A stretch of 64,000 bases of DNA, taken from positions 604,673-668,672 of the forward strand of contig JAWQFM010000006.1 of NCBI GenBank assembly GCA_033442325.1, read 5' to 3'. The notes beneath the pieces were generated by a model. That model was not told where the DNA came from, ran no database searches, and saw only the letters and a list, made by a program, of their open reading frames with translations. The translations under genes and the position numbers were made by a program. Source of the stretch: Salpingoeca rosetta (taxonomy: Eukaryota; Protista; Choanoflagellata). Shown piece by piece: positions 50,473 through 52,305 of the stretch. Each line of letters begins with the position of its first letter. Position 1 is the stretch's first letter.

Positions 50473-52305
50473 AATGGGGCTGCGGCCGTGGTGGAGAGCG
50501 GTCAGATTACAAGAGATGGGTAATCATGGAACAGTGGCGGTGGTCATGATGGCATGAACGGCGGCTGGCGGCTGGCAGGATGGCGCGGACGGCAAAACCC
50601 AATGGACGCACCCACCAAGCCCTCCCTACCCCCAGCCTCAACTGCAGGGCCAAGCCCACCACTTCTCCGAAACAACAGAGAATATTGTGGCCGTGCAAAC
50701 ACACGTGTGCACGCACACACCAATCACGCACCTCCAACCCACAGCGGGAACACCACCACCACCACAACTGTCCCAATCCACAACAACACCCCGCGCCCTT
50801 TCAACCAACTGTCCAACTCAACCTAAATACCCACCACCACCCCAAACTTCCCAGCCCTTCCAACCCACACCATCCTCGAGCTGCAACCCTCACCTCTCTC
50901 GCCCTCACAACCACTGCACACCATCACCCACCCGATCCTCCAAACACCCACATCCCCTGCTCCCCATTCCCACTCCCGCCAGACACGAAGCACGACCAAA
51001 GCTTGAAACGCACAGCAACGATGCGTGACAGCGCACCAGCCAAACACATGCTCGCCCCCCACCCCACAACCCAAGGATGGGCAATAGCTGGGCGCCCATA
51101 ACACATGCGAGCATGACACCAACGCGAGCGCCGTGCACATGGGCGTGCACAAAACAACGAAGGACAAATGGAAACCGACAAAGGTGTTGGAAAGAGGGCA
51201 CAGACTGTGGAAATGTGACGCCCTGGCCTTTGCCAGTACCCCAGCACGGGCAAACACCAAACCACCACGACCGACACCACCAGCAGAGGGTAGCGATGGC
51301 GGGTGGGAGGTGTTTGTGTGCACTGAGATGCACGCTGGGGAAGGCCATGAACAGGGCGCTGGCACAGACAACAACAGCAGCGTGCCAATGTGTTTGACTG
51401 CCTTTACAACGCGCGAGTGGTCAGACAGGAATCGCCCGCAGAGAACGCAATCAAGTGACATGAAGAGATGGAGACTCGACTGCAACAAACGCAAACACAA
51501 CACCAGCAGTGCAACACACACATGTGTGTGCACGGCGGCTCAGAGCAGGTGATGCACATGCTCGCAAGAACGCAGCAACCACCACACACATCCCCTATAA
51601 ACGGAAGCAAAGGGCGAGCGTGTGCCCAACAGTGGTGGGTGGCGGTGCAAGGCCGTGCCAGCAACGTGCGGTGGAAGAAGGGAGGGGTCAGACGCAGAGG
51701 AAGCGACGAAGAAGCGAGGGAGAGACAGCAAAGGAAAGCAGGGAACGGGACCGAGACAGGCGGGGTGCAACGCAATGTATGCGAAGCACACCTCAATGGG
51801 GGTTGAAGACCACGGGATGTGGGGCTCTCACACCAACCAGCACAATGCAGCACCGGTGGGAGAGGCGAGAAGAAGCAGGGAAGCCGAGCGTGAATGGCAG
51901 AGAAGGGAGGCTGTTCGTGCCAGGCCGTGCAAGAAAGCACAGCAAAGCACGCAGCGAGGACAGATGAAAGAAAGAAAGGGGGGGACAAATGTGTTGGGAC
52001 GAGAACAGAAGTTGCATCATGAAGATGCTGATGGCGGTGATGCCCAACAGCGGACGTGAAGCGCTGATGTGCACATGCACACGTGGCGCGACTGAACGGG
52101 CGAGAAAACCAAAAGCCCTGACAGGAGAAGCGACAAGAGAGATAGAGAGAGCAACGGAAGGAAGGTGCACTGGCTGCCATCTATACGCACGCACACATAC
52201 ACTGCAGCTGATCGCCAGCCGCAACCACAGACCACCGCCAATGATGGTCATTCTCGCCTTGGTGTCATCACCCCGCAATCTCCACCACAGCCAGTGGCAG
52301 CCGCG

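Follow-up and report, generated by a model that had tools for sequence, protein, structure and literature searches.

A candidate intron-encoded box C/D guide RNA in Salpingoeca rosetta with halves about 1.72 kb apart and predicted targets in U5 loop I

The 64,000-nucleotide (nt) stretch of the genome of the choanoflagellate Salpingoeca rosetta analysed here, called the window below (GenBank assembly GCA_033442325.1, contig JAWQFM010000006.1, positions 604,673 to 668,672 of the forward strand), contains on its minus strand an element of 1825 nt, located in an intron of the WDR36/Utp21 gene PTSG_00909. On balance, this element probably represents an intron-encoded box C/D guide RNA gene, the two halves of which lie about 1.72 kb apart and are aimed at loop I of the U5 spliceosomal RNA. 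The architecture of the element and its uniqueness, its complementarity to the real U5 of S. rosetta and a sense RNA that spans the insert were all observed directly. Judging from the two guides, the element probably directs 2'-O-methylation of U5 loop I. The features of the element, numbered from the first letter of the window and listed in the direction of transcription, are as follows.

50478-52302, minus strand: whole element, consisting of the C/D core halves and the 1.72-kb insert, 1825 nt
52273-52302, minus strand: 5' strand of the terminal helix, 24 bp (6 + 14 + 4) with bulges CACU and UU
52265-52271, minus strand: box C, GUGAUGA, which follows the 3-nt kink-turn bulge GGU (52272-52270)
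52252-52264, minus strand: D' guide, CACCAAGGCGAGA, the 13-nt spacer between boxes C and D'
52248-52251, minus strand: box D', AUGA, degenerate, 13 nt after box C
52143-52240, minus strand: 5' strand of the internal closing helices that clamp the insert, with lengths of 11 bp, 4 bp and 10 bp followed by further imperfect helices
50638-52142, minus strand: looped-out insert, with a C/U-rich 5' half and a G/U-rich 3' half
50535-50637, minus strand: 3' strand of the internal closing helices, from the fold and the segment test
50521-50527, minus strand: box C', AUGAUUA, degenerate, 15 nt before box D
50506-50520, minus strand: D guide, CCCAUCUCUUGUAAU, the 15-nt spacer between boxes C' and D
50502-50505, minus strand: box D, CUGA, directly beside the CCGC of the terminal helix
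50478-50501, minus strand: 3' strand of the terminal helix, the partner of 52302-52273

In their sequence, the 5' and 3' ends of the element together form a canonical box C/D kink-turn core. The outer pairing consists of 6 bp (GGCUGC, 52302-52297, with GCAGCC, 50483-50478), 14 bp (GGCUGUGGUGGAGA, 52292-52279, with UCUCCACCACGGCC, 50497-50484) and, next to the boxes, another 4 bp (GCGG, 52276-52273, with CCGC, 50501-50498). The GCGG/CCGC stem, the GGU bulge and the G-A-U of box C facing the A-G-U of box D match the geometry of a kink-turn. A box C of the form RUGAUGA is joined to a CUGA box D by the terminal stem, and the D' and C' boxes are accompanied by guide spacers of 13 and 15 nt, compared with the minimum of about 12 nt for C/D guide RNAs. 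Degenerate D' and C' boxes are common among C/D RNAs. An initial sequence-only reading of this DNA had described the same strings, boxes and helices, all of which were recovered at their minus-strand coordinates when positions 50150-52550 were read and indexed by script, and the kink-turn that it proposed from GGU, UGAUGA, CUGA and GCGG/CCGC agrees with the offsets in the sequence. It also placed about 1.7 kb between boxes D' and C', and the distance is indeed about 1720 nt, while boxes C and D are 1.77 kb apart. A D'-C' spacing of about 1720 nt is far beyond the known range for C/D guide RNAs. All four boxes and both spacers lie in an internal loop of 32 x 33 nt with perfect helices on either side. 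Because the two loop strands are unrelated and yet the flanking helices are perfect, the element appears to be a selected ribonucleoprotein (RNP) core rather than a decayed inverted repeat.

The pairing of the two ends, also proposed from the sequence, held when the RNA was folded. The two 110-nt ends cofold with an energy of -117.8 kcal/mol, compared with -82.7 +/- 4.9 kcal/mol for dinucleotide shuffles (z -7.2). On each strand, a 7-nt linker separates box D' or C' from the internal helices, which include two perfect helices, one of 11 bp formed by 52240-52230 and 50545-50535 and one of 10 bp formed by 52222-52213 and 50570-50561. The minimum free energy (MFE) structure of the full-length element, at -863.5 kcal/mol, retains all of the described helices and pairs the whole 5' half with the whole 3' half. 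The extent of this pairing was tested in segments of 80 nt by comparing the energy of the in-register duplex with that of shuffled or off-register segments. The outer two segments of each arm pair specifically (z -6.5 and -5.2) and the next two marginally (z -2.4 and -1.9), while beyond about 160-320 nt per arm the duplex energy equals the expectation from composition. The specific clamp comprises about 160 nt per arm and is longer than first described. A true giant hairpin of 650 bp was rejected, as the in-register pairing of the interior is no better than that of shuffled or off-register segments; it appears in the MFE structure because a C/U-rich half faces a G/U-rich half. The G-rich stretch at 50622-51056 contains many runs of G and has the potential to form quadruplexes in the sense RNA.

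No other sequence in the window resembles the element. Among the 524 pairs of box C and box D that are separated by 50-2500 nt on either strand, 11 have an adjacent 4-bp stem, and the element is an outlier with a flanking duplex of -36.3 kcal/mol versus -22.6 kcal/mol for the next best pair. It is present as a single copy in the 55.4-Mb genome. We estimate the probability that UGAUGA occurs by chance 3 nt after a stem, with CUGA directly before the partner strand and boxes D' and C' spaced by 13 and 15 nt, to be on the order of 1e-6 or less. No known RNA family was identified in the window at the Rfam gathering thresholds. A search of the genome for a small nucleolar RNA (snoRNA) of conventional size with the same guides also identified none, since the matches to the pattern were either coding or had no D box and stem.

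To identify the targets of the guides, the U5 small nuclear RNA (snRNA) was located by its invariant loop I motif, CGCCUUUUAC, which was chosen independently of the guides. This yielded two near-identical U5 loci, in which the motif is placed in a stem and is followed downstream by an Sm-like site, AUUUUUGG. The best Rfam match at the locus is U5 over the full length of the model, with 33.4 bits versus a cut-off of 40 bits. The U5 of S. rosetta (L004:1466-1616, with a second copy in L022) contains an extra hairpin of about 44 nt inserted after loop I, which explains why it scores below the cut-off and was missed in the genome-wide search for RNA families. The D' guide forms eight contiguous Watson-Crick pairs, AAGGCGAG with U5 CUCGCCUU, which places its fifth nucleotide on the equivalent of G37. 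The D guide pairs with U5 UUAC-U-AGAGA at 9 of 10 positions, and its fifth nucleotide falls on the equivalent of C45. Loop I of human U5 has the sequence GmCCUUmU-Psi-ACm-Psi, where Psi is pseudouridine, and is methylated at both positions, Gm37 and Cm45; Cm45 is guided by U85, while no guide is listed for Gm37 (PMC7960923). In Drosophila, the scaRNAs, small RNAs specific to Cajal bodies, include mgU5-38, mgU5-42 and U85 (PMC3884663).

The probability that both guides would fall by chance on known methylated positions of a single 10-nt loop is, from empirical rates, on the order of 1e-4 or less. Antisense 6-mers give a similar picture, in that among 707 windows of 16 nt from five snRNAs, U5 loop I shows the highest enrichment in the element, with 7 observed versus about 0.7 expected, a number that was reached in none of 300 shuffles. 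Taken from these complementarities, the assignment of the guides to U5 is likely, and the pairing of the D guide with the C45 equivalent is less certain than that of the D' guide with the G37 equivalent.

The host gene was identified as PTSG_00909 with an exon encoding the Utp21 domain as query. Its protein contains the first and second beta-propellers of WDR36/Utp21 and the Utp21 domain, each above the Pfam cut-offs, and its best named relatives are the WDR36 proteins of animals, as had been suspected from the sequence. Both RNA reads and assembled contigs define an exact splice at 50245|52433 that removes 2187 nt, bounded by GT..AG. Compared with the gene's remaining mapped introns, which measure about 150-560 nt, this intron is 4-10 times longer, which bears out the impression of an unusually long intron. 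Within the intron, microsatellites directly abut the element on both sides.

50246-52432, minus strand: host intron of PTSG_00909, 2187 nt, defined by spliced reads and contigs
52303-52370, minus strand: (CAA)n microsatellite directly 5' of the element, where reads are cut by the skipping of repeats
50390-50477, minus strand: (CA)n(CCA)n(CAG)n microsatellites immediately 3' of the element

Microsatellite repeats of this type are usually taken to be unstructured in RNA, and the flanking (CAA)n and (CA)n(CCA)n(CAG)n tracts could insulate the terminal helix. Their position may also be a coincidence, because introns in the S. rosetta genome commonly carry microsatellites.

Transcription of the element was assessed with two stranded runs of raw reads (X19 and X20) from one study of 2026 and with contigs from an independent study of 2011. 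Repeats at 50100-50189, 50378-50476 and 52294-52371 were skipped in the mapping, which hides the exact boundaries of the element. The intron reads are derived from the sense strand only, in the orientation of the exons, and reach about 0.3-0.7 of the exon depth over the element in both runs. In X20, the exons are covered at about 12-14x, the 5' arm at 11.8x and the 3' arm at 14.5-16x, while coverage of the insert is 8-20x in the C/U-rich half, 3-10x in the middle and 0.1-5x in the G-rich part (50622-51056). The low depth over this G-rich part may reflect either a bias of the libraries or a real depletion. X19 contains fewer reads and has a similar overall ratio of intron to exon, and in this run the insert is covered better than the arms. 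Contigs from the 2011 study cover 51344-51502 and 51617-52112 at 3.3-5.6, compared with 6.5 for the exons. The 3' intron flank (50274-50360) has a depth of 5.9x in X20 and 0 in X19. The neighbouring intron, 52536-52700, has a depth of 0, which argues that the signal is neither DNA contamination nor general pre-mRNA. A long sense RNA that spans the insert thus accumulates in an intron-specific manner. The reads fit a trimmed RNA of 1.78 kb, a stable excised intron and a retained intron alike, and they are blind to a small processed product.

We propose that the guide RNA gene is divided into a 5' half, with box C, the D' guide and box D', and a 3' half, with box C', the D guide and box D, by about 1.72 kb of low-complexity sequence. 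After transcription of the intron, the halves would be joined by two long helices, the 24-bp terminal helix outside the kink-turn and the internal set of about 100 nt per arm just inside D' and C'. Snu13, Nop56/58 and fibrillarin would then assemble on the joined core, which would direct the 2'-O-methylation of loop I in the organism's own U5, with the D' guide selecting the G37 equivalent and the D guide the C45 equivalent. The functional role would be that of a scaRNA such as mgU5-38 or of the C/D domain of U85. In its mature form, the RNA could comprise all 1.8 kb, correspond to the entire intron, either excised or retained, or represent a trimmed product. Only tentatively do we suggest that it is a single RNA of about 1.8 kb, the ends of which are locked in one C/D snoRNP as a protein-capped pseudo-circle, and which would direct two methylation guides, and perhaps non-canonical pockets for pseudouridylation as well, at U5 loop I; such a product is possible rather than probable.

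Several observations weigh against a guide RNA gene aimed at U5. Beside the target nucleotide, the D guide is mismatched (U.U), and the duplexes with U5 are short, against about 10 nt or more for C/D guides, and rank third for the D' guide and about sixth for the D guide over 11 kb of candidate targets. These comprised U1, U2, U4, U5, U6, the small subunit (SSU) rRNA, 5.8S with its internal transcribed spacers and part of the large subunit (LSU) rRNA; the ribosomal DNA (rDNA) was retrieved with a conserved 18S motif, and about 8 kb of LSU that reads N was left out. The best match of the D guide is located in a segment of an rDNA copy, a non-conserved insertion without similarity to the SSU model. 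No Rfam family matches the element, as its region has only chance-level matches at E<=10, including snoU89 with 13.7 bits. The sequence comes from a single species, and the proteins closest to that of the host gene (68% and 45% identity) are known only as open reading frames (ORFs) in transcriptomes. Read depth is exon-like in the intron's unique 5' flank (52362-52432), and in neither run do reads pile up at 52302 or 50478, where the abutting repeats were skipped. The libraries may be of either the polyA+ or the total-RNA type. Because the 5' flank is covered and no pile-up of ends is seen, the signal could derive from a retained or stable whole intron. Of the giant RNA in the sequence-only reading, the sense RNA over the insert is confirmed, but not its form as a single molecule ending 4-5 nt outside the boxes.

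That reading had classified the element as a composite of C/D and H/ACA domains. In its fullest form, a stable RNA of 1.78 kb would combine the C/D core formed by its ends with functional H/ACA modules directed at U5 Psi43 and Psi46, as a giant scaRNA of the U85 type. The relevant part of the insert is the following.

51211-51454, minus strand: central structured domain, with a hairpin, ACACAU, a small hairpin, a large hairpin and ACA-UUU; fold z -4.6

In favour of this, the insert is spanned by reads over its full length, shuffles fold less well than the central 256 nt (51205-51460; z -4.6), and three hairpins are located directly before an ACA, compared with 0.23 in shuffles. The claim of several hairpin-ACA modules is nevertheless only loosely true, as a single (CA)n/(UG)n palindrome accounts for two of the three. 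The hexamer AAAGGC, which is antisense to GCCUUU in U5, occurs twice (at 51405 and 51231) in an element with only 12% A. In module B (51359-51211), it pairs perfectly, at 6 of 6 positions, with U5 G37-U42 at the canonical 15 nt from the ACA, but the 5' strand of the pocket pairs poorly (W x x W W g). In module A (51454-51389), 6 + 5 pairs flank U5 U46, 14 nt from the box of the module, but the geometry is wrong, since one target nucleotide rather than two is left unpaired and two to three guide nucleotides are unpaired at the top of the pocket. The hinge contains no H box (ANANNA) and is instead occupied by an extra small hairpin, and neither module has a CAB box (UGAG). Unlike the domain in U85, the modules do not adjoin box C' but are located in the middle of the insert, with the domain about 690 nt and the modules about 700-900 nt away from that box. 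The Rfam search gave no U85 or H/ACA match in the region of the element at E<=10 other than the chance-level snoU89, and the RNA has no defined ends. The hairpin-ACA modules, as far as their sequence can tell, are intriguing yet fail the defining features of H/ACA RNAs, the composite label is not supported, and a full composite RNA appears improbable.

The RNA might instead function at conventional size. After removal of the insert, a C/D scaRNA of about 150-200 nt or a two-piece RNP joined by the helices would remain, and the long reads would represent only its precursor. The insert could be a nested intron, spliced from GUAUGU near 52199 to a pyrimidine-rich ...CCUGCCAG ending at 50572, which would leave a 10-bp hairpin, or it could be nicked and trimmed by exonucleases back to the clamping helices. 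Both splice-like motifs are plausible and are placed at the edges of the insert, just on the inner side of the second internal helix, and in X20 the arms are covered at 12-16x versus 0.1-5x for the adjacent G-rich insert. The U6 gene of S. rosetta also appears to carry an insert; its match (L034, G000:C9:815095-815166) covers only positions 1-68 of the 105 in the model, which is consistent with an interrupting insert. However, no read joins the arms, as no internal joint is supported by at least three reads despite the depth of 12-16x, and coverage of the insert's 5' half is on a par with that of the arms, while in X19 the insert is covered above them. The missing arm-arm reads are weak evidence either way, because standard libraries would probably miss an RNA of 150-200 nt. 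We consider removal of the insert unlikely. The element could also have no guide function, and act as an intron zipper that loops out 1.7 kb so that the spliceosome would handle a very long intron like a short one, or that regulates retention of the intron in this ribosome-biogenesis gene, with boxes that are coincidental or vestigial. This would suit an intron 4-10 times longer than its neighbours, in which the helices bring the ends of the element to about 130 and 230 nt from the splice sites, and the reads, which extend into the 5' flank, fit substantial retention of the entire intron. A kink-turn, however, is not required for a zipper, and the arrangement of boxes, unique in the window, is expected by chance on the order of 1e-6 or less. 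The loop strands, moreover, carry guides antisense to U5 that obey the fifth-nucleotide rule at two known methylation sites, and we give the zipper only a small chance.

A few further identities were considered and rejected. A transposon or foldback element does not agree with the single copy of the element or with box-bearing loop strands that are mutually unrelated. A telomerase RNA was rejected in that no match of even 6 nt to a (CCCTAA)n template is present, an antisense gene in that the reads are sense-only, and a coding insert in that its ORFs are of low complexity.

Among known RNAs, U85/SCARNA10 is about 320-330 nt long. It resembles the S. rosetta element in that it is encoded in an intron, has a foreign domain between D' and C' and contains a C/D guide that selects U5 C45 (PMC7960923). 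However, U85 carries a canonical hairpin-H-hairpin-ACA domain with CAB boxes, while the S. rosetta insert of 1.72 kb lacks both the H box and CAB boxes, has non-canonical modules and shows no Rfam similarity. Drosophila mgU5-38 is directed at the same conserved guanosine in U5 loop I as is predicted for the D' guide (PMC3884663), but it is an ordinary small C/D scaRNA, and the comparison is one of target, not of sequence. Sno-lncRNAs and snotrons are long, non-capped RNAs derived from introns, the ends of which are protected by the formation of snoRNPs (PMC4234469, PMC10948791). A sno-lncRNA has a complete snoRNA at each end, whereas the two ends of the S. rosetta element jointly build one C/D motif. 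In a snotron, a snoRNA at one end is combined with a splice site at the other, whereas the ends of the S. rosetta element would form a single kink-turn that closes the loop. The S. rosetta intron is covered over its entire length, 5' flank included, at a considerable fraction of the exon depth, which fits stable lariats or linear introns that carry snoRNAs (slb-snoRNAs and sliRNAs) and also retained introns (PMC10948791). The slb-snoRNAs and sliRNAs differ in that they are defined by ends at splice sites or branch points, not by a split C/D core. The zipper stems of long yeast introns are long-range helices that reduce the effective length of the intron. The S. rosetta element shares such helices in an unusually long intron, but zipper stems have no kink-turn, boxes or guides. 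The element has the sequence-defined features of a C/D guide RNA and is neither a composite of the U85 type nor a sno-lncRNA. What sets it apart from the C/D RNAs described so far is the 1.72-kb gap between D' and C' together with the very long compensating helices.

To our knowledge, no box C/D RNA is known in which boxes C and D are more than a few hundred nt apart. Here, they are separated by 1.77 kb and yet are found in a perfect kink-turn context, apparently enabled by exceptionally long clamping helices. If the proposed guide RNA gene is real, either a functional snoRNP would contain a loop of kilobase size or an insert would be removed from within a snoRNA that itself resides within an intron, and each outcome would represent new biology in the closest unicellular relatives of animals. 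Should one RNA of about 1.8 kb prove to be the mature product, it would far exceed every known C/D guide RNA in size and would represent a new way to stabilise a long non-coding RNA by one snoRNP. S. rosetta is genetically tractable, and the predictions can therefore be tested directly. The guided methylation of U5 loop I at the equivalents of Gm37 and Cm45, known from animals, would predate the origin of animals, and the D' guide would be a candidate for the G37 site, for which no human guide is listed in PMC7960923.

Nine fixed strain differences are located in the element and none of them in the 183-nt core, but these are uninformative about conservation because only about one would be expected in the core. 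They are transitions (50574-52169) by which the runs of the 2026 study differ from the reference, while the contigs of the 2011 study match it. At least two haplotypes or strains appear under the label S. rosetta.

The SSU rRNA match in the rDNA copy of contig G000:C9 (L040:5563-8834, minus strand) covers 3272 nt for a model of 1831 nt, with about 1.4 kb inserted, and L040:6640-6940 has no similarity to SSU rRNA. Many contig ends have the rDNA motif no more than about 25 kb away, a placement suggestive of subtelomeric rDNA.

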